A stretch of DNA of 64,000 nucleotides from Thalia democratica. Its lineage: Eukaryota. A program made the position numbers and the translations under genes. The notes under the pieces were generated by a model that worked only from the letters and a program-made list of their open reading frames with translations, searched no databases and was not told where the DNA came from. The stretch covers positions 6,572,001-6,636,000 of the forward strand of contig OZ241829.1 in the NCBI GenBank assembly GCA_965202585.1. The letters are read 5' to 3'. The number at the start of each line of letters is the position of its first letter. Position 1 is the stretch's first letter. Shown here piece after piece: positions 6,601 to 63,780 of the stretch.

Positions 6601-7280
6601 CTGACGTTGATCTTCGAGTACAGGACCCTCTTTTCTCCAAGTGTCAGGTTGGGGAAGGTTTCGTTCTCAGGTGTGACGTCACCGGAACCCTCTCCTGATC
6701 CTGAATATTCTGAAAACACTTCGGATGATCCCTGCAGTTTCGACACGATCTCATTCGCAGTGTCTTCCAATGCGGCCGATACTGGAATAAAAATATTTTC
6801 TGCAACTGTAATCTGATTTTGTTGTTTAAACAAAAGAATAGTTTTTGAGTTATTTTTTTTAAGTCAAACTAAATTTTTGAAATTTTCATGTACGTTTTGT
6901 TAGTTGTTTACTCTGTTAACAGTTTAAAAGTTTACATTTGTCAATTTTGAATTATACATCATTTTTCTAATACTACGTTAGAGTTAATACAAATACTTGA
7001 ATATATTTTAAAATTTTCAATTAGTTAAAAGTTTAGTTTTTTATCTGGTGTACGAATTTTTTAAGTTTTAGTCTCATACTGGAATAGTCGTAACGTAACA
7101 TTTGTTTGAAAAATATTGAGTAAAAACTTCTAATCTAATTAAACCTTTCAAGTTGAAGTGAATTTTGCTGGAAGTTCTCGTGAATGGCTCGTTGTAAGCG
7201 TACTCAATTACCATTCCTTTGTGCTGAAGAAAATTAAAGATTATTAAAAAGTTCAATACGTTCTTTACTTTTATGTTAAA
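3643..7280. repeat. Segmental duplication, downstream copy (direct orientation, about 17.8 kb offset)
   Basis: Roughly 90% identical by eye to 21475-25127, with sharp boundaries at both ends. Confidence 0.95.
4105..7223 (-). pseudogene. 5'-truncated duplicate of the 3' end of the giant gene (pseudogene or alternative terminal cassette)
   Basis: Exons 7145-7223, 6590-6781, 6171-6323, 5629-5847, 5244-5362, 5169-5183, 4630-4747 and 4105-4150 (counting the micro-exon), all with intact splice sites. There is no start codon or upstream exons. Exon 5244-5362 is 119 nt versus 114 nt in the source copy, causing a frameshift and TGA at 5283-5285. Confidence 0.75.
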
Positions 7281-21835: not shown

Positions 21836-21841
21836 TTTATT
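21836..21841 (-). terminator. Candidate polyadenylation signal AATAAA
   Basis: About 125 nt downstream of the stop codon and conserved in the duplicate (3977-3982). Specificity is low in AT-rich DNA. Confidence 0.35.
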
Positions 21842-21964
21842 AGTGTTTAAGCGAATTAGTATAAAAATAAAATCTTAAAAAATGTTTTATCAGTATTTCT
21901 TTTGTATTTTCCAAGCTTGGCCCTTTATAGCGTACATTGAATTTTTTTAAAGTTTTGTTTTTTT

Positions 21965-22010
21965 TCAAGCTTGTCCGGCTTCTGCAGCTGCCGGAGAGTA
22001 ACTTCCTTGC
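21965..22010 (-). CDS. Terminal coding exon: cytoplasmic tail KQGSYSPAAAEAGQA*
   Basis: TTACAG acceptor at 22011-22012, phase 2 match to the TM exon, TGA at 21965-21967. Confidence 0.88.
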
Positions 22011-25000
22011 CTGTAAAAGTAAAACGTTATTGAAAAAAATTAAAATGAAAAACTAGAGTTTTTAAGAACTTTGTTTATGTGCAAACACTAGCTAAAAACT
22101 TCAATACAAAAAAATGCACAAAGATATAGTTGTATAAATAGATAGAAAATACGTTGTAAGCCACATTTACCATCATGAAAGCCTTTAGCTAAAACAATGA
22201 TAACAGTTTGCTTTAAAAGATTTTAAAACTTTAAGCTTCTTTTATTCGACAAATGTTCTTGTATGCACATTTATAAATACTACTTACAACGTCTTATTGA
22301 TTACAAACAACTCAATTTGTAGCTTTTACGTATGACGTCACAAACAAAACAAAATAAACAATTGTAAACAAAAATAATAAAAGTGTATAACTCACTATAT
22401 AGATTTGATATGTGACATAACATATATGAAACAATAAATAGTTATTAATATCAAACGTGTATATATTTATATACAAATAAACTCACTTTGTAGCTTTTAT
22501 GTATGACATCACAGACAACGCGACAATGGCGACCAATAGGGCGACAGCAAGCGCGATCAGCAACCAGCCACTAGGTGGACCTACTGTTGACGGCTCCTTA
22601 AATCCTGTGAATTTGTTTGGATGTTACTTTTTGTAATTATAAATTATCAAACAAAAAAATTGTAGTACTAGTTTAGCTAACTTTTCTTTTTTGTTGATAA
22701 TAACAAGTTGTTATTCGATTAACTTTAAAGGGAAAAACTAAAATTTATTTTCTATATGTTTAGTAGAAAAGTTGTTTTACATTGTTTATTTCATTCTAAC
22801 TATTTCCTTATCACAGAAAAGTTAAGGTCCGTATACTCACTATCATTTAAAATAAAGAAAAAAATAGTATACTAGTACACTAATTTTCTTCTATGGCAAA
22901 AAAAAAAGAGTTTTACGTAAATTAGTAACCATTAAATGAAACAAAACAAATAATTTTATTCATAACTTTTAACTACATTGTATACGAACCAACAAATTAG
23001 TTTACTGTTTTACTTTTGCACGTATCTGCTGCAAAAAAAAAAAACACACGAAACGTATTAAACAGTAATTTTTTTTCAAATAAAACAAACTCACTAGTAG
23101 TGACGTCAGCTGTCGTGTTCAACTGCTGAGTGGTTATTTCAGGAACTGTGGTGGCCTCAGGTATCGTAACTGGTACGGTTGGTTCGACTTCAGTCCAAGG
23201 TGGTAGGACTGTTGGAAAAACAAGCAATTAGAAAAAGTTAAACAAAGCTTTTGTACAGAGAGAAACTTAAATTAAACAGTTTTTTGTCATATATTTTTGA
23301 ATAAATCTATAAGCTTAGTACTTCCAAAAACTGTTTTCACAAGTTTTAAGTTGAACCAAAAAGTGTAAAACCAATCGTTTTAAAATTATGTTTTTCTGAT
23401 AAATAACTAAAACTTTATTTCAAATACGACAATAATTAATTGTTTTTTATGTTGTTTTGTTCACAACTCACCGTATATCTGAGTGTCGCACAGTTCGATC
23501 GTGTCACCGATTTCCGCGCCCGCCGCCGCCGCCGCCTTCACTTTCCGCATGATCGCCCTCGCCTCCTGGTGGTGGTTCCTCCTCGTCACGATCTTCAGCA
23601 ACACTTCCTCGCTCGACCTCAAAGCCGTTCTGTAGCTCACGAGCGATCTCATCGATCCGGATCCCTCGCCGGATCCCTCCCCGGATCCTGGTTGAATGTC
23701 GAATGTTATTAATTTAAACGACGTTGTAAACATAATTATGTTTTAGATAGTAGATGTTATGGAAGGAAAATTGTTTACAGGCTGTTGCTTGTACTATTAG
23801 TTTTATCACAGTTTTGTTATTAAGCTGTAGGAGTATTTTTTATTTGACGAAAGTGAGACTTGTGAATACTCTTAAGTTTTTGCAGTATGTTAAACAACTT
23901 TAAAATAAAGTTAAAGAAAATACTTGTTTAAATTTTTTCACGTTTAAACAACCACGTTTATTGGAATAAAAATGAACTTGGAATTTTTGCAGGAAATATG
24001 GAAAACAAACCTCCTTTGTCGACGTATTCGCACGAACTCATAGTGAGATCGCAGTAGAGCTTGATGAAGCCCGCCCACTCGTCGTAATGATGATCGTGCA
24101 CTTCGACGCTCTCAACGTCCAATATCAATCTCAACTCTTCCAACGATTCCAGCAAGTCCGTTTCTGTGGAAAGTAATTAAATGTAGCTCGAAAGTTTTGA
24201 AAAAATATGTGACAAACATGCTCAAGTTCGCATGGCTTATAAACGTTCTCTAAAGTTTTTTTACTAAAAAAGTCTTTTACACAGTTCACATCGGTGATAT
24301 TTTGATCTGAATGACGAAGTATTTCGAAATAATTGAAAAGATTTTGTGCAATCACCGATTTAAAACATATTCATAGCTTTATCAACAACGCAAGTTAAGT
24401 GTGAACTCCAACTCGTAGTTTCAAAGTCAAACCGTTCTTGTATCTGATGTTGATCTTCGAGTACAGGACCCTCTTTTCTCCCAGCGTCAGGTTAGGGAAG
24501 GTTTCGTTCCCAGGTATGACGTCACCGGAACCTTCACCTGATCCTGAATATCCTGAAAACACTTCGGATGATCCCTGCAGCTTCGACACGATCTCATCGG
24601 CAGTATCTTCCAATGCGGCCGATACTGGAATAAAAAAATATATTTTCTGCAACTTTAATCTGATTTCGTTGTTTAAACAAAAGAATAGTTTTTGAGTTAT
24701 TTTTTTTAAGTCAAACTAAATTTTTGAAACTTTTCATGTACGTTTTGTTAGTTGTTTACACTGTTAATAGTTAAAAAGTTTCCATCTGTGAATTTTAAAT
24801 TATATATCATTTTTCTAATACTACGTTAGAGTTAATACAAATACTTGAATATATTTAAAAATTTTAAATTAGTTAAGAGTTTAGTTTTTATCTGGTGTAC
24901 GAATTTTTAAAGTTTTAGTCTCATACTGAAATAGTCGTAATGTAACTTTTGTTTGAAAAATATTGAGTCAAAACTTCTAATCTAATCAAACCTTTCAAGT

Positions 25001-28000
25001 TGAAGTGAATTTTGCTGGAAGTTCTCGTAAATGGCTCGTTGTAAGCGTACTCAATTACCATTCCTTTGTGCTGAAGAAATTCAAAGATTATTAAAAAGTT
25101 CAATACGTTCTTTACTTTTATGTTAAACAGTATACATAAATGACGGTCCTACTCAAGTAGTACTGATGTAGTCAAGTTATATTTTTATGTAATTATTGAA
25201 ATAATTCCTTAAAGTTTAAATTTAATTTTACAACTATGAACTAACCGAAGGCAAAGTTTCAGTTTTGTTTCCACCGAAATCAATAAAATCGTCACTGATC
25301 CATTTGTCAATGACGTCCTTTGTATTTTCCTCTTCGCTTATAAAGTACCCATCATACACTGAAAATTTTAGTAGGTTGATTATTTGTAGTCTATATTTTC
25401 TAAATTATGCAATTAAAACGTAAGAGTTTATATATAAAACTAAGCCACTAGGAACCAGCACATACAGATATTCATACAACTATAAACAATAACAAATAAA
25501 ACAAAACTCACTTTTATCAGGAATGAAAGGTCCAGGAACTGCAAAAAATAAAAACATCAAAAACTTGTTCAAAGCTTTAAAAAACAAAACAAAAAATCAA
25601 CACTAGTTTAATAACAAGTTTACAAAAGCAACGTTAAAGTAGCAATTATAGTATTTTAATTTGGATTGAAATGTTAACAATATTTATATATATATTTGCT
25701 TCATATTCTAACTATGATGTCACACTCACCTCTGACGTGCACCGGTGACGTGATGTCGTCAAAACCCCCTGTGACGTCATCATCCTCGTCCTCCGTGATC
25801 AGCCACAGGTTGATGTTCTGCTCTATGACGTCATCGTTCGCAGCGTCGCCGGTGGAAACTCTGTACGTCACGCTTGGCTTGTCGGCGTCGATTTCGAGAG
25901 AGTCGATGACGTAATGCGAGAGACCCGATCTCTCGTCCAACAGCTTCTTGCCCTGAAAGTGAAATTAATGTTTTAGCTTATAGTATGATTATACATTGAA
26001 TTTAGAGAGAAACTTTTTTACTTTTGGTTGATTTTAAATTTTTAGGAACTTTAATATTGTGTTCTTTTTAAGTATTTTACTCATACTTCATTTTGTTAGA
26101 CAACTAAATTGTTAATTAGTTTGTACTTTTTGTACAGCAGCTTAAGAACTTTGTTTATGGCTTAGTTTTATTTGTCAGTGAACCAAAAATATTTTAATAA
26201 AATTTATTATTTAATTTAGCAAGGTTCCAAAAAAGAAAAACCCGGTAAAAAAAGTTTTTACGAACTATAACTTACAGTTTCTATTGAAGCATATTTCTCA
26301 ATAGCTGATGGCTCAAACCGAATTTCAATATCAAACCTCCTAAGTGCTGTAAAAATATATATGTTTTCAGTAAAAGTAAAGTTAGTTCAACTTTTTACTA
26401 AGAACACATTGATTGGCTGTAGGATAATAACAAAGCAAAATTTTACTTTTGTGTAATAAGTTATAAAAAAAGTATACTCCTTTTAAAGCTTGTATGAAAA
26501 GCTTCAAAACATAACTCGTTGTTTTGAAAACAAGTATCATTGTTTACTTTGCTAATGATAATACATCTACCATTTTATTTAAAACTTATACAAGAAAAAA
26601 ACAGTTTCAATCTTTATTTTGTCACATTACAAACCTTGCACGGTAGAATCCGGGTACTTTTCGTTTACTTCAACCGGATCGAATCCGGGAAGAACGTTCA
26701 AATGAGCAAGCAGTTGATCTTCTTCTGTGTGTTCGAAGTAAATCACTCCGTTGTTGATCGCAGGGTCCATCAGCAAATACTTGTCGATCTGAGCAATTTA
26801 TTTCGTTATTTTGTTGTTTAAATCGCACTACTGATGAGAGAGTACCACGATAATTTAACAGTTGTAATGTTGTTGTTGTTAAAACTTTTATCATTTAACA
26901 ACATACGCTTATGAGACTTAAGGTATCAAGACATGTTGTCTTGGAAATTTGTTTAACCAATGTAACTAAAGATGCACGAAAATAATAAAGTAAAAGTCTC
27001 AGCTTGAGTTGTATATATAAATCTAAAACTTAAACATGACTAAACAGTTTTAAATTACAACATTCATCCTAAAACACTAGAATAAATTTTACAACAAACA
27101 AACCTTTTCAACGTATTCGGCAAGCACAAGCGGGTCTTCGGGCTCGTACAGTTTCTGAAGATCAGAATACTCGAATTCGGGGATTACCGCGGATATGATC
27201 TTCTCCTTGACTATCTTCTTGGGAGTCGTGACTTCTTGTGTTGTAATTTCGACCGTGGTCGTTGGCTCAGGTGTAGTTGCTTTCTAAAATTTAGAAATTT
27301 TATAAACTTCAGCTGAATAGAAGTATTTTAGTTTTACTTAGATACATTCGGTCTGAAAAACACACAATTAATTAAAAACTTAAACAATAGGTTTTTATTA
27401 GGTAAAAACGACTTACAAATTTTCTTGTTATACTAACCTGCGTTAAAACACTTAAACTATCAAAAACACAAAACATAAACCTAACAAAAAGCTTAACAAC
27501 TTGTACTTTATACTTAGTACAAGGTCAGCCCTATGGGAAAAAATAGATAAATTAGTCACTAAAAAAGTTCAATTAAACTATAGTTATACATTTTAATCAA
27601 ACAAAACTAACAGTAGTTATTTCCACAGTTGTCTCTTCCACAGTAGTAATTTCAGGGGTTGTGGGCTCAGGAGTGGTTGTCGTGGTAGCTTCAGGAGTCG
27701 TTGTTGGTTCAGGTGTTGTTTCAGGTTTTGTGGTAACCTCAGGCGTTGTTGTTATGGGTTCCGTGGTAACCTCAGACGTTGTTGTCATGGGTTCCGTGGT
27801 AACCTCAGGCGTTGTTGTCATGGGTTCCGTGGTAACCTCAGGCGTGGTTGTCATGGTTTCAGTGGTAACCATGGTAGTTGTTGGTACGGGTTCAGGAGTT
27901 GGTGGTGTTGGCTCCTCAGTGGTTACCTGTGAATGAAAAAATAAACAGTATTACTTATTTAAAAAAATTAGATAACAAAACTATTAAAACTTCGTTGTAT

Positions 28001-31000
28001 ATGGAAAAACAAGTACTTAAAAAAGTTTTCAAGTTTTCAATTTAAAATATCGATTTAAGACTTTTACAAAATACTTACCTCCTTTGTTGTTATTTCAGGA
28101 GTTGTTTCCGGTTGAGTGGTTTCCACAAAGGTTGTCGTAGCAACATGAGTGGTTTCCATGGTAGTGTCAACGAAGGTGGTTTCCTTCTGGGTTGTCATGG
28201 CAATTGTGGTGACCAGGTCCAATCTCCAATCATGAGGTCGTCCTGTGTTAATTTTTAATACAATTGCAATAAAAAACAAATTAATAAAGTTCTTGAACCT
28301 TTGGTAGATTTTTAAGCAAAAAACTAATAAACTATTTAGCACAATAAAATAAATTGTCTTTAACATTCTTCTAAAACTTTTTTACACTAAAGAAACATTT
28401 TTAACGACGAACCGATGATGCGGTATCCCCTTGTCTTGTCCGTGCTGTTGGGGCCGAAAGGAGGGTCGAAATCGTACATGAAGTTCATCGTCTGCGCCAG
28501 GATACCCGTCCACCAGGGGTGCGGAATCGATGGGGATCCCTTGGGCGCGTCCAGGTATATCTGAAATGAAAAAAAGAAAAATAAATTTCACGTTGTTGTG
28601 TGGTCTCAATGGCGTCTGCGTGCGGTTTCAAGTGTTTGAAGTATTAATCATGTTTTGAACTATAATAGGAACAAAAGTAATCTTTAAAGAGTATATCAAT
28701 TGTTCATTGTTCAAACATTATTAGCCTAAAAACTAACTAATAAAAACGAACAATGTTCAACAGGTATATTTATGACGGTATAAAATAAAAAAATAAATAG
28801 ATAAAATATTTAGGTTAAAATTTTACAATTACGCTAATAAACTTACTTCGACAGTAACAGTGTCGTTGTCTTGCTCTGGCTTTTTATACACTCTGTTGAA
28901 GTGAATACTTTCAACTTCACCGTCTGGATAGTAGACTTTTGGATCTTTCAAATACTTCGTGTACTGTTAGTATTGCAAAACAAATGTTACAGGGTCAGTT
29001 TATACTATTTATTTTGCAAGGTTAAAAGCTAAAGTTGAGTATTACTTTCAGGCGACGTGGAAGACATTAAGCTAACTTATTAATTAGTTTTTATGCGTAC
29101 TTTTATTTACTTGCTACTTTTAATTAATTTCAGATTGCTCTTTGACGACTTTTCAGAAAACGTACCACCTTGGTTAAGTTAGAAAGCAGTTTGCTCACAT
29201 TGATAAGCAACTCGTATTTAAGTTATTTGTGTAATTTTTTTATTTTCAAGCCTCGCTACCGTCCTAGAAAATTTGTTCAATTTTTAACGCGCAGAAAAAA
29301 TATTATTTTTTTCTCATTGATGTACAAAATTCTTGAAATATCTTAAAAACATTTTAAATTCTGTTTGATTAAGAACTTTACTGTCGCTAAAAATCTCACT
29401 AGAACCATAGACTAACATAGTAAAGTATTTTTTTTATGAATATATCCGTGAACTAATAAACTAATCAACTTAATATAAACTTAACAAACTCTAAATTATT
29501 CAATCACAATTTCAGACTCACCGCATCCACCAGCTCCTTGACTGCTCCTTCCGGCAACTCCGTTTCGTTTTGGGGGATTACCATTTCGAACTCGGCGGTG
29601 AACAGCCTCCTCTCGTCGGGGGTAGTCCCGGCGGACGTCACTTCGTTCACGAACTCGGGTTTCCTGCCGCGGTACGGTTCCTTCATCTCGATCTCTTTGA
29701 ACTTTTCAGGATCGTAGTTACGCTCTTTGATGTCCAGCTGTTAAAAGTTAGTTATGTTATTGTTGGTTATGTGATTTCTGGTATATTTTTTGAAACTTTA
29801 AGAGTTTGTTTCGGGGTCTTATTGTGTTTTTTTTTCTACCAGACTGAAATAAAAATAGTTTCGTTCAGTTATTTAAATCAAACTTTTTAACTTTTTTTGT
29901 TTAAGATGCTCAAAATTTAAAAAATATCATTATCAAGTAAATAATTTTTCTTCAAAAAGGCAGAATTAAGAATATAATTTTACTTTTTACAAAGTAAAAC
30001 ATTTAATTTTTGTATAGTTTTTTACATTTTTTGTATAATTACTATTAATTTGAGCTTTTCAACCATATAAACTAGCTGAAAATTTAGCAATTCTGCCATA
30101 TTAAACCCGCAAACTTCATTTTTCTCACAATTCACATCAAACCTTGAAATGAGCGGTGACAACGTCCCCTGGCCCGTCCTGCAAGTACTGCACCTCCAAG
30201 CCGTCCACTCCTTCCGTGCCCTCCAACAGAACGTTTTCCAGGTACCCCTTCAGCTGGTGCTCCTTGTCCGTATCCCACTTGTACATCCTCATCCGGTCCT
30301 CGTGGTCCCTCATCACTTCCAGCTTGGCTTCGGGGTCCAACGAGACGTCCATCTTGCCGATGACTGCGACCGTTTTGGCTGCAAAGCGAAAGTGACAAGT
30401 TGTTAACTGAGTTAACTATTGTTTTGGATGAACAACTTTTTAAAATTGTTTACCATGCAATTTTTGTGTTTAGTCTATAAACAGTCTATAAATGTAAATA
30501 CTTTAATAAAAGGGTTTTGTCTACAACGACAATAAAAGTGTAATGCTCAAAGTTTAGTTTTGCTTTTCTTCTTGTATTTTACATATTGTCTTACAGTACT
30601 ACTACTTTGTTTTTAAGTTGAAATAAAAAAAAAACGAATAACAGACGGTATTACCGCATAAATGTTGATGAAAGAAAAATAAATTAAAAACTATTTTACC
30701 TTCTTCGTTGTCTTCTACATAATTGCTGTAGGGGTATGTGGTTATGTTCGCGTTGCTATTGTTAAGGGTAAGCACGTCTGGTACGTTGCCGTAGTAACCG
30801 CTTCCTTCGGGGTCCGAAGAACCTGACCCCTCGAATCCCGATCCTTCCATACCACTTCCTGAATTTCCGCTTCCGAGGAACATTGGGTCGTAGAAATCTA
30901 AAAATAAAAATGAAAATAATCTTCTGTGACTGGGAAAATTAGAAAAGTTTAAAGCTCAAGCGTGAGGAATTTATAATAAAAATGCTTTTGTACTTTACGT

Positions 31001-52000: not shown

Positions 52001-55000
52001 CACTCTCAATACTTCGTCATCAGTTGTCGGTTTGAGGGTCTAAAGGAAAGTAGTTGAATAGATAATGCAAATAATTGTAATATTTTAGAAACAATAGTAT
52101 AAAACTTTGTTACTAAAAAAGAAGTCAAAAAAGTTTTATTGCTAAATTCATAAAAAGTTTCCAAAGCTTTTGGTAAAAATATACTTTTTGTCAAAATAAT
52201 GAAACTAGTTTATAAAACAATGGTATGGTTATATTTAGAAAGTTAAATTAAAAAAGTTAAAAGTTAAAATTAAAGTATACAAACTCACAAAAATATTAAC
52301 TTCAAAACACTACATCTACAAAACTCGATTCAACTTTTGTTTCAAGTTTCTATGACAGACTTAATATAACAATTTTAGTACTTCTAAATTTGTTTTTTTA
52401 TAGATATGTACATATACTGTTGAGTTACAAACAGTAAGGACAGAAAACGACAACTAACTATTACTCCAACCTTACAGACACATTTCTGCTTCCATGTAAT
52501 GTAGGCAAAGTAGTATAAAAAGTTATTAATACATGTACTTAAGTTTTTATAAATACTCAATTATTGTTTTAATTGTTAAGGTGTATACACAAACCTTTTT
52601 TGTATCTACTTTTTTTAAGAATCAGTTTTTAACTAACAAATAGGATATTTTTGGCTATAGTTTTTAAAACGTAGTTATACTATAAATTATATTCTTAATA
52701 AAAGCTTTAGTTATATATACTTCTTATAGTGTAACAAATTATTAAAATATGTACTTAGCTCATGTACTTAAGATATTTTTAAACATTTGAATATTGTTTA
52801 AAATATTGAAATGTGTACATAAACTTTTTTGTGTACCAACTTTGCTTAAGAACTAATTTTCAACTATAAAGTTGTATACTTTTTTCCTGAACTTTAAAAA
52901 CGTTTTTATACCAGAAATTATACTTTTGATAAAAGGTTTAGTTGTTTATACTTCTTATGATATAAAAAACAATTTTTTTTATTCAAATATACAGATTTGA
53001 TATATATATTTCAAAACCTTGGAATCGAAGGCGACATCCGAGTTGTTCATCTTCACCACTACCTTCAGCGTGTCAACCAGCCCCTCCGGTTTCCTGAACT
53101 CCATGGCAACCGAGGTCGCCGTGGTAACCACCTCGGACAGGTCCGTAACCGGGCGGGGCGCCACCACGCCCAGGTAGCTGATCTTGTCGCTGCTGACGTC
53201 ACCGATGTATGACGTCACGCTTGCCTGGTAACGCTCGCCGGGCACCAGTCCCCCCACCTTGATGGTCGTCATGGTTTCCATGGCGGTGATGTTGAACCTG
53301 AACGTCTTTGTTTCGAAGTCAGCTGAAAATAAATAAAGTTTTAAAATAATTAGTTCTTAACAATGTATTGTGATTTGATTTTTATTAAATAATTGTGAAA
53401 ATAATTTTTATTGTGAAAATTTATTTTTAAATATGTTGACATTTGGATTTAAGTTACTCTTTGACCTTTCAAAATGAGTTGATTTTTTTCATTTAATGAT
53501 AAATTACCCTGGTACTAAAAATTAAAATAATAACAAATGTTATTCAGGGTATGTTTTTTAATTATAAGAAACACACAGTTAGATTGCGGATTGAGTATCA
53601 TCTCGTACGCGACAACAAAAATTATCACTAGATATTATCAAGCAAGTTTTTATGACAATATACTGCCGATGAGTTGTTTACAATAAACGTGTCTGTGATG
53701 CCCGAAAATAAAGTTTTTTTATTATAATGTACGCAAACAACTCACAATTAGATTGCGGTTCCAAAATCATCTCGTATCCGTCAACATCTTCCTCGACCCT
53801 GCCTACGTCAGCTATCATTTCTCCTATGACGTCAGAAGCCGTCAGTTCCAAAAACTTTGGCTTCGGTGGCAACTCTGTGACGGAAATGAATATAAAACTT
53901 GCTTTTTTAATAAAAAAAAAGCTTTTTTTTTATTGAAGGTTTGTTTCGAATCAGTTTATGATTAGTTGAAGATATAAAAACAGCATTAACAGTTTAAGTA
54001 AAACTTACGTTTTAATGATTTTTTAAAACTCAAAAAGAACTTTACGAGTTTTATAACCACAAATTAAAGCTTAAAAGTATTTCTCATGACTAAACAACAT
54101 TATACACCAAATTTATCAGCCTGCAATATACTATAATTGAGATAGTAAAACTTGAGGAAAACATTAAAAACTAATATAAGTAAACAAACTGAGTCTCGCG
54201 TTGAAGGTGGCCGGTTCGCTGTTCCTTCCGTTGCTGGAAGTTTCTATTGTGACGTAATAGAGTTTTCCCGGTGACAACCCCTCGTCGAAATTCACTCGTA
54301 TTTTAGTGACGTCATCACCGGATGACGGAATGATGTCTTTTGATTGGATGGGGTCGTCGCGTGATTCGCTCCACACATAACATCTTAAACAAAATTACGT
54401 CATGAGGATTATTATTATAATTGCTTTTCAGTTTTATTTGATAGTAAACTTACAGAAAATGCTTATTACTGTAATTTAACACTAACCCACGCATAGCATC
54501 ATTGGTAAATGTACTTACCTAAAACACTGTATTACTTTTTTCAAGCATTAATTTTGTAGTTAAAGCTTGTTATGTACTAATAAATATGTTTGTTAAAGTT
54601 GGAATATTTTAATTAAGTTTATAACTGCTGGTCTAAAGTTTTTAAAAATATTTAAAAGGTGATTAAACAACACAATAAAAGTTTTAAAAACAAAAAGATC
54701 TATTAAAAATGTCTGATGACCATGAATTAAAAGTTACTTTAAAGTGAACTTAGTTTCCAACCAAAATGTATTTTAATAGAACAAACCGAAAATATTTTAG
54801 TTAAAATATTCATTCCATAGATTACATTGTAAGCGAATTAAATTTGTTTATTCAATGATACACTTACTTGTAAAATTCTACAACTCCTTCGTCTACGGGT
54901 GTGAATTCAACTTGTATTTCCCTCAATGTAGTTTTCAGTGTTGCTTTTTCAACTGCTGTTGGTTCTGTTTGAAAAAAAGAAGACAGTTTATACTTGTGCT

Positions 55001-58000
55001 TTTCAACACACAAGTATTTCAAACTAAGTTAGATTCAATAGACTAATGAAAACTTTAGGTGTTTACTTAAATATACATTAACTAAGTTATCTTTTTTTTT
55101 TCTTTTTTAGTTATTGCTTAGAGTATATTTAAAAATTGGTTCACCTTAAAAATTTAGAAACTATTGGAATAAACTAAACATATTTGTTATTTATCTGATA
55201 TTTACTATCTCCTTGTTACAGGTCACTAACTAATTGTATCAACGAAATCGTTAGATTCTCCTGCTTTTTCGTCAACAAAAGGAACAACTTCTGCTCTGTA
55301 GATTTCTCCTGACACGTAAGGACGATCGAAAGATGTCTGCAGTGTGGATCTGGAATTTAAATAAGGCTATAAGGCTCATACCAGTATCATAAAAATAAAT
55401 ATAGGTACGAGTTAAATGCGCACATATATTTTAAATTATTTAGAGTAGTTATTACTTTTATAATAAATTATAACACAAAATGATTTATCAAAAAAATTAA
55501 AGATTTTGTTATTATATATCCCTATAAGGTAAACTAAGTATTTAAAACCAAAACATTGTTTCTTTTCAGAAAATTATTTCTTTTACCTATAATTGAGAAA
55601 CAAGCTCGTATCAGAATTAAACACAACTTTATAATGCATTACAATCAATTTATTCTTACAAAGTCTTAAATTAGTATTTTTTATTTCCACAAGACAATTA
55701 TTATTTGAAGCTAAAATGTTAAAAAAAACCTATAAGAGTTTACGTTTTTTTTACGTACTTGTACAAACTAAATCAGCATACTGATAACAAAATTCATGTA
55801 AAAATTACCTTGATGAGTTGAGTGTTTGGACTTCTTGTTCGACCTGCTGATCCGACGAATACAGCGTCACTCTGTATGACGTCACAGCGAAAGTCGGCGA
55901 GGGTTGGAAGAAAAGTCGAATGAAGTTCCTAGTGGCAGTCAGTTTTCCAGATGGGACCGGTTTCGATGAGTAGAAGTCTGTAGAATTTATGGAGTAAGAA
56001 ATTAACTTAATAAGTAGTTTTTAAACTTTTTTTTTTATTAAATAAAAGGTAAAGATATAATGTTTTTCAGTAAAAGTCGACTTTAATCCTGAAATCACGA
56101 AAAATACGTTAGAAATTTACTTTTAGTATAGTATATATAAGTTGTATATTTTCATTTGAATTTTAAAAACTCTTATACAATTGAAATACAACAACTAATG
56201 GCTAAAAAATATTTTTGTTAACCCACCGTGTTTAGCTTTGAATTTCTCCGAAACCACCGACTTGTTGCCAACCGAAACAGTTTCTACTGTGACGTAATAA
56301 TCATCTTCCTCTGGATTTAATTTCAACCCGTCTATTTGGAATACAAACATCCGAGTCCGCTGCTCGAAATCGTCCATGTCCACAATCAGGGATTTCCCCT
56401 CGCTTGAAACCACAAAGTGCTTGTACTTGGACTGGGAAGGAGGGAAGAATTTTCCGTGTATTTTGGTAAAGTCGGCCTTCGCCATCATTATCGACACTGC
56501 TTTTGGTTCTACAATCGAAGAAAAAATGTTTGTAAAGGAAGAGCAGGTTATAGATATTTGTTCAATGTTTTTTTTGCAATTTCAATATTTCAATCAATAC
56601 ATTTTGACCGTTTAAGAAAAAAAAAATCACAGCGGGAAAATTATGCTCTAAGCAACTCAAAACCAAGTGTAGCTACAATAAGAAAAACTTGAGTACTTTA
56701 AGAGTAACGACGAAAAAACACAAAACGAATCAAACCGAGATCGAAGCTGATGGTTGCAGGTTTGCTCTTCGCTTCATTGACCACGGTTGTGACTGTGACG
56801 TCATAACTTTCTCCTTGCACCAAATTATCAACCGTCACGCTTGACTGATCACCCGGAACGTCGATTCTCCTCGCTTCCCCGTCACTAGGTGTCAGTGTGA
56901 CTCGGAAAGAGTCACGTGGGAGGTCGGGAGAAAGGTTCCAACTGATTTTGGCTGTAGTCTTGCCAAGCTCCACCTTCAGATCATCCACTTTTGTTGGAAT
57001 GGCTGCAGAAGAAAAACATTGTAAAAGATAAATCACTTACAAATAGATATTAATTATATGTTTTATGAAATTGTACATGTTCAATAAAGGTTTTTATATA
57101 GTTAAATAATTTCATTATTAAGTAGTATGCATTTAGAAAAAAAAATATATATACATTGATTAAAACATATATGATGAATTTTAATGAAGAAAAAAAGTTT
57201 TGCGAACTCGAGAACAAAAACGAAGTTTAAAACCTTTACCTCAGAGATAAAGCAAAACAAACTAAACGCGTGTCTTCTTAATAGTTAAATCGAAGGTGTA
57301 AAACTTTAACCTGATTTGTGTACATACACTTAAAACAACAAACTATTAAAATCAAAACTGCCCAACTCACCGGATTCGACCTGCAAGTCGGTGGAAACGA
57401 ACTCTGAGAACTTTCCGTCGCATCCGAGACCCCTTATTTCGACGTTGTACACCTTGGAGGGTGTGAGTGGGGTTTTGAAGGTGACGTCATAATTGGCTGG
57501 TTCCGACGCGGCAACTTCAATCTGTTCGTATATATCAAGTTAATTACATTGTTCAAATACAAGGTAAAATCCGTGTTTTAATTTCTTAAAAGTATATTAG
57601 ATGAACCTGTTTGTGAATTTTATTTTTTAAATGAATTCACTAAGCGTTCGCAAAATGTTCTTTATTTTAGGTGTAAATTCAAATAAAAATTTCACATAAA
57701 TTTAAAGATGTTTGCTTTGTAATAAAAAATGTAAAAATTATCATTATTTTCAGTGAGTTTTTATCAAACACGTGTTAGAATGTAAACTGGTTGCTTCTTT
57801 ACTTATTCCTCAAAAAATTTATCAACGTTAATAAACATAAATACACACCTCTTCAACAGTGTTGCCTTCCAGCACGAGTCTCGCCTGATGAGGTTGTTTC
57901 GATGCTGACGTGAACCTGATGTTTAGTCTGTTCGAACCCGTGAAGCTGTGATCCACCATCTCCGCTAAGTGAGGATCTACACATTGTAGTTTGTAAGGTT

Positions 58001-61000
58001 TCGTATAAAAACCAAAACTATATTAGTTAAAAATGATTTATTTTAATGCGTAAAATTATAATTGTTGGTTAGCAGAAAGCTTAAAAAAGCTTTTAAAACT
58101 CTGAAAAAAGATACATGTGGTGTGACCTAATTTCAACATATAAGCTTAAAACAATCTTTTTTAGTTTTTTTAACAGTGAAGTACAAAAATTTATAACTAA
58201 ATGTTAAAAAAAAACTAACAAGTGCAGAATTCTCTGGTCATTTTTATGTTTCTGTCGTCTATTTTGAAGTACATGTTCAGTATGAACACCTGAGCAGGTT
58301 TCAGAAGATCAGACGGGCAGAATACAGTTTCTGTGTCCTCGTCAACTTGGAAAACCTGAAAAAAAATAAACTTCTAGTTTAGCTGACCGTATCATAAAAC
58401 CACTCTATTAGTAAGAATTAAAAGAATTTATACTTTAAAAGTTTAGAAATCCCTGAGAAAAAACTTTAACAAAAAACTTTTTATACTAATGTACACCATT
58501 TCAAAAGTATCATTTACAAACGTTCTCTTATTTCAAAAAGTCAAACGATTGTTTTCACGTTGAAATTGTTTCGAATATCAACTGCGTTCTATAAACATAG
58601 TTTGATGACCAAATATTCAGCATTGCAACGTACGCTTTGACTGTTTTAGCTTGTCAAAAGTTTTAATCTTTTTAAACTGTAAAACTGTTTTATTGATGTT
58701 AATCTTTTCATTACAGCTGTAAAGTACTTTTTCTTTTATTTGCGTATCTGAACACCAACACAAAATAAATAACGTGTTAAAGTACAACCAATGATTTTTT
58801 TACTTAAACAAAAATTCGGAAAACTGCTTGGAAACTGCTTCTACCTTTTTCAAATAGTAAAATAAAAGCATTTTAAGAAACAAACCTTTACGACGTCACC
58901 ATCTTCTGTTGTCACTTCAACTGTGACGTCAGTAGCATCGGTTGGCATGGTAACCTCAATGGAAGCTGACCCGTTGCTATGCGGGGTTGCTACGATGTCA
59001 GCAGGTGCTGATGGGGCTGAAAATGAGGAAGATGATTATTTATTCAATAAATATTTCAAAACATTCTAAAGTCAAGGTAAAAATAAAAATTAAAAAATAA
59101 AAAAGTTTAGTTGTTTATTCTATTTCAATATCTAAGTTTTCAGAAAATAGTATTTTTTTAATAACCAAATTTAACTATTTTAAAATTTGTGACATAATAA
59201 ACTTAAAGGAACGCAAATAAAATACTTTATCTATACTATTATTTTCGATAAAAAAACTAATTAGTCAAACTAACTGGGTTCGACGAGGAATGTAACGGGG
59301 TCGCTGCTGACGTAGTAGTCGACGTAGTCGTTGTCCCTGGTCGTCACCGTGGTAACCCTGTATGTGACGTCAGGATCCGCCCTGAAGTCCTTCAGTGTCG
59401 CTTTAAATTCCCTCCTGTTTTCTACGTCATCTGTGGTTTCTGTTGGATATATTATTTAATACATTCGTTGAATTAAAACTATTTACTTACTTTTCTTGCT
59501 AACTTTAACAAAGTTGAATGCCAAAAGTGTTTAGAACTTACTTTATTTACAATGAATTAAATTTTTTTTTTATTATTTGTCATTATAAGTACATTTTTAA
59601 TAACTTAATTTTTTTTTAGCTAACTAAAAGATGATAATGTTTTTGATATTTACAGTTTAGGTTTTTAAAGTATTTACACTACTAGATAACTAAAGTTTTC
59701 ACAAGTATACTAGAAATAACTTAAATGCTTAACAAGTAACTGTAAGAGTACGTTTGTAAAAAAAGTTCTCAATTTATTTAGCTTATGTTGTATTTTTATG
59801 TTAAACATATCAATGTTACTATATTAGTATTTGTTTTATATTGTTAAAATTGTAAAACTATTTTTTTTTGTTTGAAATAACTTTTAATTCAAACAAGTGT
59901 TTAAAAAAGACTAATTACTTAACAAATATATGAAAATTAAAAAATGGCTTTGAAAAATTTTTGTGCACAACTAAACTTAAACAGTATCTTAATTCTATTT
60001 ACTTGACTATTTAAACTATTCTTTTAAACTAAGTTATTATCAAAAAAAAAAAAAACAAAGCTTTTGTTTTAATTTATTTTCTAAAAAGAAACGTTTTCAA
60101 AAAGCTAAAAATAAAAAATAAAAAAATTAAGTCTTTTTTAAAACACTCTGTAAGTTTCAATTCTAAACAACAATGAGAACATTTAATTATAAAATATTAA
60201 ATAATCTATGCTCAACTTTTTATATAACACAAACTCATAGATATAAGTTGCTTTAATATCCGTTAAATATTTTTTTTACATTGACTGTTATAACAAACCA
60301 ATAGTATTCAAAAATAAGTTTAGTTAAACTTTTACGAAAAAAGAAAATCAATTACAACCAACTAACCTTGACCGTAACAACTTAAAAATTCGAAATGTAA
60401 CAAACACAACAGAACAAGTTTAAACATTTGAATCTGCACTCAACATGTAAAGTCGAGAATCAAATGCAATTGAGGTGTTAGCTCACAACAAGTAGTATAT
60501 TGCCGCGGGGAACAACATAACAATAACAGTAAGGCGGCAAAAATGCGCGGTGCCATTGTTTTCACATCTTTTGTTTTTGTGTATACTTAAAAAATTGTAG
60601 TTCATAACAGCTAAGATGAGTAATTTTAATTAATATCTACTGCCATTGTAAAAAGGTGTTAAAAAAAACTTAAAGTTCATATTAGCTTATTGTAAGAAAT
60701 TATAATTAATATACTATGCCTTTGTACACACACATTTTGTTATTTTATGTCAAATTTTTCAAATTGCAGTTAATATAGGCATGATGTGCTAAGATTTTAT
60801 AAAAAAATGCTATTATATCCAGATCTTTTGTTTTAAAAACATTTTTTTTTCAATTTAAACTTGAATTAAACTCAATTGATAAAATTTTAACTAGTATTTT
60901 TTAGCTTCGATATGTAATTGAATTCAGATGTTTTGCTTTTGTGTATACTTAAGCAAATGTAGTTCATTTAAGCTTATCGAGCTCATACTATTAATTAATA

Positions 61001-63780
61001 ATTTCAAGCCTTTGTATGGTTTAAACCCAAGTAAGAAATGTCGAATTGCTTATATATTACCATTGTGTTTAGATGTTTTGTTTAATAAAAATTTGTTTAA
61101 TTTCAGTTCAACTAAGCTGTGTGGGTCACATTTTAATTAACGCTCTGTGTCTTGGTTTAACTTGCATGCAAATAAGATGTCGTTGTATTCAGTTGTTTTT
61201 TGGTTTTTCAATAGTTTTGCAACTTGCAGTTCATTAAAGCTCATTCTAATTGATATTTTCGACCTTGGTGTAATGTACACACAAGTAAAAAAAAATCCTA
61301 ATTGGTTTTCAGTATCATTACTGCATGTTATTTTGCTCAATTAAATTTTTCTTAATACAATTTCGATCAAACATACTGAGAATTTTTTACTAGATTATTG
61401 TTTTTTTTTTTTCGTTTTTATTGTGTCTTCATAAACTTACAGTTTTAACAAAACTAAGTATTGGTTTCTGTTCTTTTTATGTTGTACTTTTAGTATAATT
61501 CAGTTCATCATAGTTTAAAGTAACAATGTTGGCAAAATTTAGTTTAGTTAAAATTACTATGACGGTATACATTCTTAGAAATTGTGAAGGTTGTTTAGGT
61601 GATATGTGTATTTATTTTTTAGTCTAATGAAAAACTCTGTAGCAAACATAATATTGTGACGTAGTCACACAAACTGCAACATTTTTGTTTAATATTCAGA
61701 AAAAAATGTATATTTTCCTAAAATTAGTCTTTTTTTTATTAAAAAGTATCAGATAAAGATTTTGTAAATAATCTTTAAGTACTTTTTTGTTGACATCTTA
61801 AGCAATGCGAGCAAGACTCACATAAACTGTTTAGTATTTGCAAGTGCTTATAACCTTATGCATAATTGATTTTTACTGTGTTAAAAAAGATTTATTTTCT
61901 GAACACAAAATTCAGCTGATCGTAGTTGATAATTTAAAACAGAGAATGAAAATTTAAACAAGAGATTTTCAGGCATAGAAAGAGAACAAAACTAACTAGT
62001 TTTTACATTAAAAACTTATAAGTTATTTACTTGGATTTTCTAAACATAGTTAAGTCTGACTGTTTTTTGCTTTTACTATAACAATTTAATTTGCAAATTT
62101 AGTCTACATAAGTCTACAAACGTTTTAATGTGCGAACTAATAACTTACTGTGTTAAAAAAACTTCTTAAATATAAAAACTTTATTTTTTGTATAAGTCTG
62201 TTAAGTATTGCATATAAAACACTTTATTCGTAACACTCCTTAAAGTATGCTTTGTAATTTTCTGATTTTGAACATGCATGAAAGTAATTTGCTACATAAT
62301 GGCACCAATTTTAATGTGAATATACATTTGCAGATTTATATTCTCCTATGTTTTTAATGTTAAAGTATGTGGAATATTTTTAAACTATGAGATGAAGTTT
62401 TAAGGAAAGTCGTTTTTAAGTGTTTTCCAAGGTTATAAATTACTATAAGTTTTGGCAAAGATTGAAAAATAACTTTGGCAATTATGCAAATTTTTACGGT
62501 TTTTAATTCGTGATTTGAACACCTTTTATCAATTTTGCCGATCTTTCAAATTGTTGCGAAGGCAATTTTGGGTTTACAAGAATTTTCTTTCACTTTAAGA
62601 CCAAATTTGAAAGTTAAAATTTGATCATATTAATACCAAGTCACGGTAAAAATTATGAAAAGAAAATACTAATGCAACTTCTAACTTTTAACTTGAAAAT
62701 TCATAATAATACTTTATAAATTATTCGTAAACTAATATTATAGTGTTGTTAGATAATTTGCCACATATATGCAATGTTTTAAGTGTTTAAATTTCGAAGT
62801 TGCATGAATTTTTGTTGTTTTCACATTTTGATTAAATTGAAAGTGATAATTTCTATAGTTAAAACGTTTTTTTATTTTTCATATACTACTGAAAACTTAA
62901 ACTACACCACACGAACAAATATAAACAAGACCGTAGAAACAGTTTCAAAGCATTAACTACGCGATTTAACTACAGTTTTGCATTAACACTGTTTATTAAT
63001 TTAAAAAAAAAGTAAAGTTAAAATTTGTAAAATAAAACAACAATTCACTACTAATTCACCCACCTAAATTAAAAAGGTTGTAGAACGTAGATTCTCCAGT
63101 GTTCGTGTCTTCGATTGTGCAGTTGAAACCGTCGACGAAACCCTTGTCAACTGTAAACGTCACGAACGTTTCGTTCAACGTGACGTCATAATGCGGTTGG
63201 AGAGAAACTGAACTTGCTTCGAGCGGTCCTGTTAATAATAGATTTTTTTTACTGCTGAAATTATAAGAATATTTCATTTAGAAAACAATGGTGTACCAAA
63301 GTGCGTAATTAACAAATTTATACTTAATTGGAAAAGCACAGGCTTTTATGTATAAAGACTAACTGTTTTGAGTATGAACTTTTAAAGTTTTCATACTTTA
63401 TGATAAAAGTAAATAAATAACTTAAATATAATAAATAAATATTTGTATACATATAACTCAAATGGGTGTGAACAACATAAGGTTCTTCGCTGTACAATAG
63501 CTATGTACAGCAAAATATTTAAAAATGCATAAATTCCAAAAACTAACTGAGGTGGGTGTGAATTACTAGAGGTTCTTCACTGTATGTCTTTCCAATGGCG
63601 TATTTAACTTGGAACACCAGTTTGTTGCCGGGAAGATCCGGAAGTGATTCCTCGAAGAACCGGTAGTTTGCGTGTCCACGGATGAGCGAGGAATCGATCA
63701 GGTAAAATCCGTATTGTTTGTGCGCAGCGTGCAATGTGAACCTGCGAGAAAGATTGTCCGTTAGTAAATAGTTGTTATTT
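21965..63780 (-). CDS. Giant multi-exon single-pass membrane protein, 5'-partial: >=25 FN3-like repeats, Pro-rich hinge, SEA-like modules, Ser-Gly clusters, mucin segment, TM helix, short cytoplasmic tail (about 4,400 aa in window)
   Basis: 85 GC-elevated exons with GT-AG boundaries and matching phases, open frame to TGA at 21965-21967. Exons 5'->3': 63548-63741 (or -63780), 63064-63228, 59275-59439, 58886-59016, 58220-58355, 57849-57976, 57371-57521, 56736-57002, 56227-56508, 55809-55977, 55231-55349, 54868-54964, 54190-54383, 53746-53874, 53018-53322, 51892-52039, 51513-51649, 51162-51303, 50804-50960, 50436-50557, 50131-50233, 49675-49838, 49374-49569, 48984-49093, 48446-48626, 48043-48164, 47646-47757, 47253-47413, 46833-46983, 46468-46583, 45953-46133, 45310-45443, 44757-45011, 44074-44212, 43555-43679, 43145-43361, 42791-42915, 42439-42547, 41954-42129, 41571-41733, 41137-41252, 40594-40747, 40039-40178, 39773-39878, 39317-39471, 38818-38974, 38535-38680, 37895-38264, 37519-37649, 37202-37344, 36583-36748, 36188-36328, 35453-35599, 35190-35293, 34825-35035, 34403-34572, 33861-34087, 33477-33653, 33041-33183, 32754-32825, 32322 (or 32298)-32443, 31927-32108, 31424-31603, 31152-31285, 30700-30897, 30143-30378, 29522-29737, 28847-28963, 28413-28560, 28079-28242, 27612-27926, 27104-27283, 26635-26788, 26276-26346, 25730-25952, 25512-25538, 25246-25358, 24992-25070, 24433-24624, 24011-24163, 23472-23687, 23095-23208, 23014-23028, 22487-22604, 21965-22010. 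Confidence 0.92.
22487..22604 (-). CDS. Transmembrane exon
   Basis: RFKEPSTVGPPSGWLLIALAVALLVAIVALSVMSYIKAT: about 23-aa hydrophobic helix followed by basic residues. ACAG acceptor, GTGAGT donor. Confidence 0.9.
23014..23208 (-). CDS. Thr-rich juxtamembrane stalk exon (23095-23208) and 15-nt micro-exon (23014-23028, TDTCK)
   Basis: VLPPWTEVEPTVPVTIPEATTVPEITTQQLNTTADVTT. The micro-exon sequence and splice sites are conserved in the duplicate (5169-5183). Confidence 0.75.
23472..26788 (-). CDS. Membrane-proximal SEA-like modules with two more Ser-Gly clusters; includes 27-nt micro-exon 25512-25538
   Basis: In-frame exon chain with FSGYSGSGEGSGD (24433-24624) and GSGEGSGEGSGS (23472-23687). 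The micro-exon VPGPFIPDK has TTGCAG acceptor and GTGAGT donor, phase 1-1. Confidence 0.8.
27104..28242 (-). CDS. Thr/Pro/Glu-rich mucin-like segment (3 exons)
   Basis: TTIAMTTQKETTFVDTTMETTHVATTT.., VTTEEPTPPTPEPVPTTTMVTTETMTTTPEVTTEP.., KATTPEPTTTVEITTQEVTTP. Confidence 0.88.
27730..27870. repeat. Coding 33-bp tandem repeat (11-aa MTTTPEVTTEP), 4 full units plus a partial unit
   Basis: Units beginning gtggtaacc at 27730, 27763, 27796, 27829 and 27862. Confidence 0.9.
28413..30378 (-). CDS. Further SEA-like modules (4 exons)
   Basis: Exons 30143-30378, 29522-29737, 28847-28963 and 28413-28560 join in frame (e.g. TVAVIGKMDVSLDP..GDVVTAHFKLDIK; RLFTAEFEMVIP..VESIHFNRV). The fold assignment is inference. 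Confidence 0.6.
30700..30897 (-). CDS. Exon with Ser-Gly cluster (putative glycosaminoglycan attachment sites)
   Basis: FLGSGNSGSGMEGSGFEGSGSSDPEGSGYYG: SG dipeptides with acidic neighbours, as in perlecan, agrin and syndecan GAG sites. Confidence 0.8.
31152..37649 (-). CDS. Region of several SEA-like / ferredoxin-fold modules (16 exons)
   Basis: Alternating beta and helical patterns, including the SEA-typical FNVKIEFTF..DLFKDPDSEYFKQQKEDIEQM (34403-34572) and VRIDVDREFFFE..SKNELSEQLNDLLKTFKSGLFKSVEFLRF (31424-31603). The domain identity of several modules is inferred, and no canonical GSVVV cleavage motif was seen. Confidence 0.65.
37895..38264 (-). CDS. Exon encoding polyproline hinge followed by first SEA-like module
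   Basis: GTFPTLPPPPPTISPPPPIPTMTPQPTTPPHISTRFPPPVPPPISPPLPPPRR, then NYVMVVRV..NEKESSKRKELENDVTKSF. Acceptor TTCAG at 38265, donor GTAAAA at 37894. Confidence 0.85.
38535..63780 (-). CDS. FN3 array portion of the giant gene (47 exons; about 25 complete fibronectin type III-like domains plus one partial at the window edge)
   Basis: Repeated units of about 85-100 aa with phase-1 introns at domain borders, usually two exons per domain. FN3 hallmarks are visible, e.g. AIPTKVDDLKVELGKTTAKISWNLSP..DNLVQGESYDVTVTTV (56736-57002), GGLVPGERYQASVTSY (53018-53322), TGLRPGHEYYIKI (43555-43679), GLYPGNTYKIKI (41137-41252). The style resembles PTPRB/PTPRJ or tenascin ectodomain FN3 repeats (family knowledge, not a search result). 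Confidence 0.88.
60367..60427 (-). CDS. Candidate internal alternative first coding exon B encoding signal peptide MFKLVLLCLLHFEFLSCYGQ
   Basis: ATG at 60427, hydrophobic core, small-residue cleavage context (CYG-Q), strong donor AAG|GTTAGT at 60366. Phase 1 splices in frame to exon 59275-59439 (G+AA = Glu). A CAG acceptor lies 6 nt upstream of the ATG. Confidence 0.6.
60440..60556 (-). CDS. 38-aa uORF, or alternative signal-peptide exon A (MAPRIFAALLLLLCCSPRQYTTC|CELTPQLHLILDFTC*)
   Basis: ATG in strong context (aaaacaATGG) at 60556, Leu-rich h-region, internal donor T|GTGAGC at 60486 (phase 1). If unspliced, TGA at 60440-60442 falls 12 nt before ATG-B. Confidence 0.4.
   Translation of the reverse strand: MAPRIFAALLLLLCCSPRQYTTCCELTPQLHLILDFTC

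Follow-up and report, generated by a model that had tools for sequence, protein, structure and literature searches.

A predicted giant type I membrane glycoprotein with a fibronectin type III rod, a stalk of small modules and a multi-copy membrane-anchor cassette

The SEA-type transmembrane mucins MUC16, MUC1 and MUC3/12/17 are large type I proteins that combine mucin segments and juxtamembrane modules with a short tail. In C. elegans, MUA-3 and MUP-4 join EGF, VWA and SEA domains to a transmembrane span, LET-805 (myotactin) carries about 32 fibronectin type III (FN3) domains and a transmembrane span, and DIG-1 reaches 13,100 residues with FN3, Sushi, VWA and EGF domains. Giant matrix proteins restricted to one lineage are a common feature of marine invertebrates. 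Here we describe a gene built largely from these parts on the minus strand of a 64,000-nucleotide (nt) stretch of contig OZ241829.1; by the window we mean the whole of that stretch. On balance, we read the window as holding the C-terminal 4,383 residues of a selected type I membrane glycoprotein gene of about 209 exons and about 12,089 residues. The predicted product would begin with a signal peptide, followed at the N-terminal end by a head of EGF, Sushi and three VWA domains, continue through FN3 rods and a 1,423-residue mucin exon, and then form a second long FN3 rod, the last 25 domains of which fall in the window. A proline hinge, a stalk of small modules, three acidic Ser-Gly clusters with a short mucin segment, one transmembrane helix and a tail of about 18 to 21 residues would complete the chain.

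Window DNA is AT-rich (24 to 38% GC), and its minus strand carries short open frames flanked by AG and GT. These were assembled with a gene finder that combines codon log-odds with trained splice-site matrices and links exons according to their phase through dynamic programming on the minus strand. The resulting model links 83 internal exons (63741 to 22487) to a terminal exon, giving 84 exons and a coding length of 13,149 nt, or 4,383 residues, with no in-frame stop and with compatible phases throughout. The terminal exon is entered at 22010 and ends with a TGA at 21965-21963, and an AATAAA lies at 21841. The 83 introns have a median length of 285 nt; the largest measures 3,624 nt and the next 978 nt. 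Since all introns but one are shorter than 1 kilobase (kb), neither a promoter nor a terminator would fit between the FN3 part and the stalk and transmembrane part. A first-pass annotation had read at this locus a continuous frame of 85 exons and about 4,400 residues that runs past the window and closes with a transmembrane span and a short tail without a catalytic domain. The model agrees with that reading: 84 exons form one stop-free frame, the chain extends about 82 kb upstream to a signal peptide, and the TGA and AATAAA follow after about 18 to 21 tail residues.

Evidence for coding selection comes from a 43-kb contig of the same assembly (C584, 1-43003), which is collinear with the locus from window position 31927 to 7 kb past the window end at 84 to 94% identity. 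C584 is either a second, extremely diverged haplotype or a young segmental duplicate on a separate contig. Synonymous divergence between the window and C584 is 0.12 to 0.17, and exons differ by 4.7% compared to 10.2% for introns. Introns contain 786 gap positions, while the only indels in exons are one of 6 nt and one of 12 nt, both multiples of three, and exon mismatches at codon positions 1/2/3 number 127/69/383. The ratio of nonsynonymous to synonymous divergence (dN/dS, by the Nei-Gojobori method) is 0.10 over the hinge and stalk; among FN3 exons it is 0.16 within the window and 0.13 directly upstream. A pseudogene or a chance chain of open reading frames was rejected on dN/dS values of 0.10 to 0.16.

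Conservation of the junction between rod and stalk extends beyond this genome. The sole word-index match to exon 48 was a 595-nt contig (L029) in the metagenome assembly ENA ERZ17174914. On this contig, the latter half of the proline hinge and the initial part of stalk module 1 are followed by a GT where the donor lies here, an intron similar in length but diverged in sequence, an AG and then the opening of exon 49, whose first 23 residues are the same in both proteins. Over 125 codons, synonymous divergence (dS) from the gene is 0.48 and nonsynonymous divergence (dN) 0.08, for a dN/dS of about 0.17 and 81% protein identity. The hinge and stalk exon pair is therefore conserved and spliced alike in a related species. 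A related organism is present in the ERZ17174914 sample at low coverage. A search for exon 77 in other organisms returned no match.

Split at phase-1 borders, the rod within the window comprises 25 complete FN3-sized units of 85 to 105 residues and one unit cut by the window edge, mostly encoded by two exons each with phase 1 at the domain borders. Half-domain FN3 exons are mostly too short for a Pfam scan. Exon 57002-56736 matched Pfam fn3 above the cut-off (3.8e-11) as well as Fn3_Dep-1_3rd (7.3e-8), and in PDB it matched fibronectin and tenascin chains at 8e-20 to 3e-9, the best being fibronectin at 8.4e-20. A hidden Markov model (HMM) iterated from this exon over the whole chain recovered 19 significant FN3 units in the window and 55 in the entire chain. 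Self-BLAST of the protein detected no internal repeats, because the FN3 domains are too diverged. The rod ends at a proline hinge of 58 residues (45% Pro) that shares an exon with the start of the first stalk module, so the FN3 rod is physically tied to the stalk.

Between the rod and the membrane lie about 1,900 residues of hinge, stalk, mucin and Ser-Gly segments. The mucin segment spans 172 residues, with 44% Thr, 14% Pro and 16% Glu. Three Ser-Gly clusters of acidic S-G-x-G type fall within the last 1,030 residues and fit the glycosaminoglycan-attachment consensus, making them candidate attachment sites. The single membrane span has a Kyte-Doolittle mean of 3.09 and is the sole transmembrane-like span in the 11,915 residues scanned, where it stands at the C-terminus; the tail beyond it ends in A-G-Q-A. 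The features that define a transmembrane mucin are all present, namely, a Thr-rich mucin domain, one transmembrane span and a short tail. The window part contains 8 Cys and 48 N-glycosylation sequons.

The stalk comprises about 1,600 residues. Its segments look like strand-helix-strand-strand-helix modules of about 100 to 130 residues each, from whose length and spacing we estimate roughly 12 to 14 modules. Three of them (exons 48b-49, 66-67 and 77-79) are mutually homologous by iterated HMM, and alignments to module 1 give a z score of 5.4 for exon 66 (0 of 300 shuffles) and 4.4 for exons 77-78 (1 of 300). The first-pass annotation had described these modules as SEA-like, a label for which our searches gave no confirmation. 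Scans of 44 stalk exons found no SEA or other Pfam family above noise, with the modules being split by introns and scanned as fragments only, and the Pfam SEA HMM run over the whole genome matched contig C9 only and nothing at this locus. PDB sequence searches with the stalk sequence gave no match, phmmer of exon 66 against 1.84 billion representative proteins gave 0 matches at an E of <= 0.001, and an ESM Atlas feature search of the stalk gave low recognition, with phage baseplate noise only. An AlphaFold2 model of exon 66 alone, the largest single-exon fragment (78 residues, single sequence, no alignment), reached a mean predicted local distance difference test score of 47 and was unusable. 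The autoproteolysis motif G-S-[VI]-V-V is absent from the window part, and one A-S-V-V-V occurs far upstream, at residue 511 of the chain; many true SEA domains are without this motif. The strand-helix pattern would be compatible with a SEA or ferredoxin-like fold. Other elements of the earlier annotation held: the long array that it had likened to a phosphatase ectodomain is indeed FN3, of the fibronectin, tenascin and DEP-1 kind, and the glycosaminoglycan-type Ser-Gly clusters and mucin segment that it listed are present, with glycosaminoglycan attachment being putative. Its statement that no named family has this combination is likewise consistent with our searches of Pfam, the 1.84 billion proteins and the literature, which gave no match to the stalk and no paper combining tunicate or ascidian with SEA and FN3; from these sequence and text searches, no named family with this order of parts was identified.

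When the 90 kb upstream of the window were analyzed with the same gene-finder model, the chain carried on in the same style and the full model grew to 209 exons and 12,089 residues over about 124 kb (C5:6593963-6717756), so that the architecture seen in the window is only the C-terminal third of the chain. The chain starts with an exon encoding a Met and a 26-residue signal peptide (ext 145756, 81.8 kb past the window end), and further upstream only noise-level exons were found. Domains recognized in the upstream part are Sushi (8e-6), EGF_CA (7e-9) and VWA (1e-6, 1e-4 and 2e-3), alongside about 50 more FN3 domains, so that the whole chain holds about 75 FN3-sized units. A single exon of 4,269 nt, located 27.1 to 31.4 kb past the window end, encodes 1,423 Thr-rich residues in repeats of 9 to 10 residues, and has a VWA domain and FN3 domains as its neighbors. 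A three-FN3 super-repeat has undergone very young tandem duplication at 8 to 17.5 kb past the window end; exons of 261-279, 100 + 200 and 279 nt recur there four to five times and encode almost the same protein each time. The FN3 rod is still growing through unequal crossing-over. A sole chain-start signal peptide at one end and a sole transmembrane span at the C-terminus give the chain a coherent type I topology.

Table 1. Features of the minus-strand gene model, in window coordinates
Feature	Position	Strand	Supporting observation
Exon 1: C-terminal part of an FN3, first part beyond the window end (ext 64185-64086)	63548..63741	-	Codon-position mismatches against C584 2/1/5
Exon 2: N-terminal half of an FN3, strands A-C'	63064..63228	-	Exons 1 and 2, dN/dS 0.12
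Largest intron, 3,624 nt, splitting one FN3	59440..63063	-	FN3 HMM aligned in register over the junction
Candidate alternative first exon, Met and hydrophobic signal-like peptide	60366..60426	-	GT donor, phase 1
Exons 3-47: C-terminal half of the split FN3 and 24 FN3 units	38535..59439	-	dN/dS 0.156 over window FN3 exons
Exon 48: proline hinge and start of stalk module 1	37895..38264	-	Sequence and donor position kept in L029
Exons 49-64: stalk, small alpha/beta-looking modules without a family match	31152..37649	-	dN/dS 0.10 for 38264-31927
Exon 65: Ser-Gly cluster 1 with acidic neighbors, candidate glycosaminoglycan sites	30700..30897	-	
Exons 66-69: further stalk modules; exon 66 module homologous to module 1	28413..30378	-	
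Exons 70-72: Thr/Pro/Glu mucin segment	27104..28242	-	
Exons 73-77: final single-copy stalk modules; exon 77 is the first half of the exon-78 module	25246..26788	-	
3' cassette, exons 78-84, also the edge copy of the array	21475..25127	-	
Cassette contents: second half-module; Ser-Gly cluster 2 (24624-24433); Ser-Gly cluster 3 (23687-23472)		-	
Cassette contents: Pro/Thr linker (23208-23095); transmembrane span (22604-22487); tail and TGA (22010-21963)		-	
Next copy of the 3' cassette	3643..7280	-	91.8% identical; splice sites all kept

Several points weigh against one gene of this length. The gene finder has no model of gene ends, which leaves both the length and the unity of a chain of about 12,000 residues approximate, and about eight low-scoring micro-exon bridges make the upstream model approximate as well. 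All splice junctions are predicted from the DNA sequence alone. The membrane-anchor cassette is multi-copy, and no independent contig confirming its join at 25127 was seen. The remaining points concern the 3,624-nt intron, whose length exceeds that of the window's next longest intron 3.7-fold. If exon 2 is read through its donor, a stop follows two codons later (63056-63058). Within the intron, the exon-like sequence at 60426-60366 encodes a Met and a hydrophobic core resembling a signal peptide, carries a GT donor and joins exon 3 in the right phase as GAA. In C584, its ATG, donor and frame are kept despite a net 9-nt deletion, two changes are synonymous, and a block of about 170 nt just upstream (60430-60600) is conserved. 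The region 60366-60600 is single-copy in the genome and hence not a transposon.

These observations could be accommodated by two genes rather than one: an upstream secreted giant with the signal peptide, VWA domains, mucin and FN3 super-repeats that ends at 63056-63058, and a membrane gene of about 4,280 residues that starts at 60426-60366. In a milder form, an internal alternative promoter would yield long and short products from the same locus. The difficulty for two separate genes is that each product would be left with half of an FN3 domain at the break. Strands A-C' come from the exon ahead of the intron and strands E-G from the one behind it, and the halves fit one profile, with the HMM in register across the junction. 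Codon-position mismatches against C584 are 1/2/8 for the half before the intron and 1/1/7 for the half after, with dN/dS values of 0.12 (exons 126-127) and 0.06 (exons 128-130, full-model numbering). Both flanking halves are thus as constrained as whole domains, which argues for continuity across the intron. As for the internal exon, chance survival of its frame, ATG and donor has a probability of about 1/6 by rough arithmetic, and AT-rich introns readily yield a Met followed by a hydrophobic peptide. A twin candidate at 60554-60490 was discounted; its changes are only nonsynonymous, and it would create a TAA with exon 3. We consider it likely that the long splice across the 3.6-kb intron exists, and regard an additional internal start as a tentative possibility. 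That the locus is strictly two genes appears doubtful.

A second alternative concerns the last seven exons, which form the edge copy of a tandem array of 26- to 30-kb units with at least 16 copies, a feature absent from the first-pass annotation. Copies of these exons recur downstream, and in the nearest one a 5-nt insertion breaks the frame of the exon-82 copy (5362-5244). Exon 80 has 28 matches in the genome, 17 of them on this contig and on the same strand, at spacings of 18 to 34 kb (mostly 26 to 30 kb) over 400 kb downstream (G000:C5:6193115-6596161), and the array units are 92 to 98% alike along their full length. Stalk exons 57 and 66 are single-copy in the genome. In the 70 kb downstream of the gene, only array copies were found, with no other open reading frame of >= 130 residues and no further coding exons. 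In three runs, which stem from two studies, contig word depth rises 10- to 25-fold near 25150, and one contig (runs X1 and X2) departs from the window sequence exactly at 25127; together, these show that the copy number is real.

The transmembrane cassette could be foreign to the gene, such that the stalk gene encodes a secreted protein or ends elsewhere and what seem to be its final seven exons come from the opening unit of a neighboring array, joined to it by chance or in assembly. Homology to the array starts at 25127, in intron 77 and 57 nt before exon 78, the genome holds at least 28 copies, and C584 ends before the cassette is reached, all of which would suit such an arrangement, as would the step in word depth and the contig that departs at 25127. 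However, the end of exon 77 and the start of exon 78 are both in phase 0 across a normal 175-nt intron, and the boundary falls in the middle of a module: exon 77 contributes the initial strand and helix, exon 78 adds two more strands, and the module that they complete can be aligned with module 1 over the junction. It is therefore the giant gene that looks like the source, with array copies that start mid-domain. Moreover, no other terminal exon or stop follows exon 77, and the chain would otherwise be without an anchor or an end. In addition, three array spacers revealed no conserved exon with a Met, a hydrophobic stretch and a phase-0 donor. A foreign cassette is, in our judgment, quite unlikely, and we retain the cassette as the 3' end of the giant gene.

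Whatever their relationship to the giant gene, the array copies appear to be under selection. Compared with each other, they show a dN/dS of 0.15 to 0.17, and mismatches of 2.6 to 3.7% in exons compared to 7.4 to 8.7% in cassette introns. Concerted evolution with a functional copy, use as alternative 3' ends or the presence of unseen genes are possible explanations. We speculate, with the balance of probability against it, that the cassette copies, which keep splice sites and frames, are working coding units and not debris, and that the stalk is built from a domain family without described relatives. Such copies might supply the giant gene with alternative 3' ends, or form the bodies of unseen genes for small membrane proteoglycans. 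If so, the array would be an unusual way to multiply a membrane anchor.

The gene can hardly be a receptor tyrosine phosphatase of the PTPRB/PTPRJ kind, either without its catalytic domain or with catalytic exons further downstream: one FN3 matches the model of the third FN3 of DEP-1 and an FN3 rod with a single transmembrane span is shared, but that FN3 scores better against generic fn3 and fibronectin, a stop and AATAAA close the tail, and only array copies lie in the 70 kb beyond. The ectodomain also includes a hinge, a stalk, mucin and Ser-Gly segments, none of which R3 phosphatases have, and this reading was rejected for want of any catalytic domain.

Two further properties of the sequence were recorded. 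Among the 84 donors in the window, GTGAGT occurs 16 times, GTTAGT 13, GTTTGT 11 and GTAAGT 6, and the consensus is unusual in having T at position +3. The palindrome TGACGTCA is found 34 times in the 13,149 nt of exons, where 0.19 occurrences are expected and each of nine control palindromes occurs 0 to 1 times; in exons, it mostly encodes Asp-Val-Thr. In 28.6 kb of introns of the same gene, it occurs only 3 times.

Taken as a single gene, the locus would encode a very long, sugar-coated filament that rises from the cell surface. Its VWA, EGF and Sushi domains, in the distal head, would probably bind matrix, with FN3 rods and mucins acting as spacers hundreds of nanometers long. As an FN3 domain measures about 3.5 to 4 nm, the 25 domains in the window alone would span about 90 to 100 nm, and the whole chain, with its two mucin segments and about 75 FN3-sized units, several hundred nm. 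Glycosaminoglycans would be borne on the Ser-Gly sites, no more than about 1,000 residues away from the membrane. A tail this short leaves no room for catalysis and little for a connection to the cytoskeleton, which points to a passive tether or glycocalyx component and not a signaling receptor. The protein would be a candidate for the structure that physically couples an epithelium to the matrix outside it; if the source is a free-swimming tunicate, that matrix would be the tunic, the house or a mucous net. If the single-gene model is true, a chain of about 12,000 residues would stand with the largest membrane-anchored proteins that have been predicted in any relative of the chordates. The predicted membrane-proximal glycosaminoglycan zone, the stalk modules and the VWA/EGF/Sushi head provide testable handles on this proposal. 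To a specialist, the arrangement itself should be a moderate surprise; the selected-looking array of 3' cassettes is the less expected part.

Compared with described systems, we regard the gene as a lineage-restricted mosaic: most of its extracellular modules are familiar, their arrangement is new, and the stalk is without any sequence match. Among the R3 phosphatases (PTPRB, PTPRJ/DEP-1 and PTPRQ), likeness is confined to the FN3 rod, the single transmembrane span and the one DEP-1-like FN3; a PTP domain is absent here, the tail is about 18 to 21 residues long, and the ectodomain is not composed of FN3 only. Perlecan domain I and agrin place Ser-Gly glycosaminoglycan sites beside a SEA domain, and syndecans combine such sites with a transmembrane span and a short tail; here, acidic S-G-x-G clusters stand beside small alpha/beta-looking modules near the membrane, modules for which a SEA identity is unproven. 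LDL-A, Ig and laminin-type domains of the perlecan and agrin kind were not seen. As in syndecans, the tail is short and contains G-S-Y, sharing only G-S-Y-S with the C1 region, but it is without the C2 end E-F-Y-A and the membrane span is not syndecan-like. A syndecan was rejected as a reading of the gene since the tail, which ends in A-G-Q-A, has no C2 motif. Interleaved VWA domains and FN3 runs recall collagen XII, and an FN3 array ending in a transmembrane span and short tail recalls usherin. Unlike usherin and the NC3 arms of collagens XII and XIV, the protein has no triple helix, laminin-type or LamG domains or PDZ-binding end, and it adds mucin, hinge, stalk and Ser-Gly parts.

Closer in overall plan are the SEA-type transmembrane mucins, with which the protein shares Thr/Pro mucin segments, tandem small juxtamembrane modules, one transmembrane span, a short tail and, presumably, a role as an extended element of the glycocalyx. 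It differs from them in giving no Pfam SEA match and having no motif of the G-S-V-V-V type in the window, in its acidic Ser-Gly clusters, and in consisting mostly of FN3 with VWA, EGF and Sushi domains, which mucins lack. The nematode proteins introduced above resemble this one in size class and in parts list (FN3, VWA, EGF, Sushi, small juxtamembrane modules and a transmembrane span), a likeness of architecture. MUA-3, MUP-4 and LET-805 have long filament-binding tails compared to the about 18 to 21 residues here, and their domain order differs; DIG-1 has no transmembrane span, where this protein has one. The giant protein described here may plausibly tie an epithelium to a matrix above or beneath it, the same job as that of MUA-3/MUP-4, LET-805 and DIG-1.

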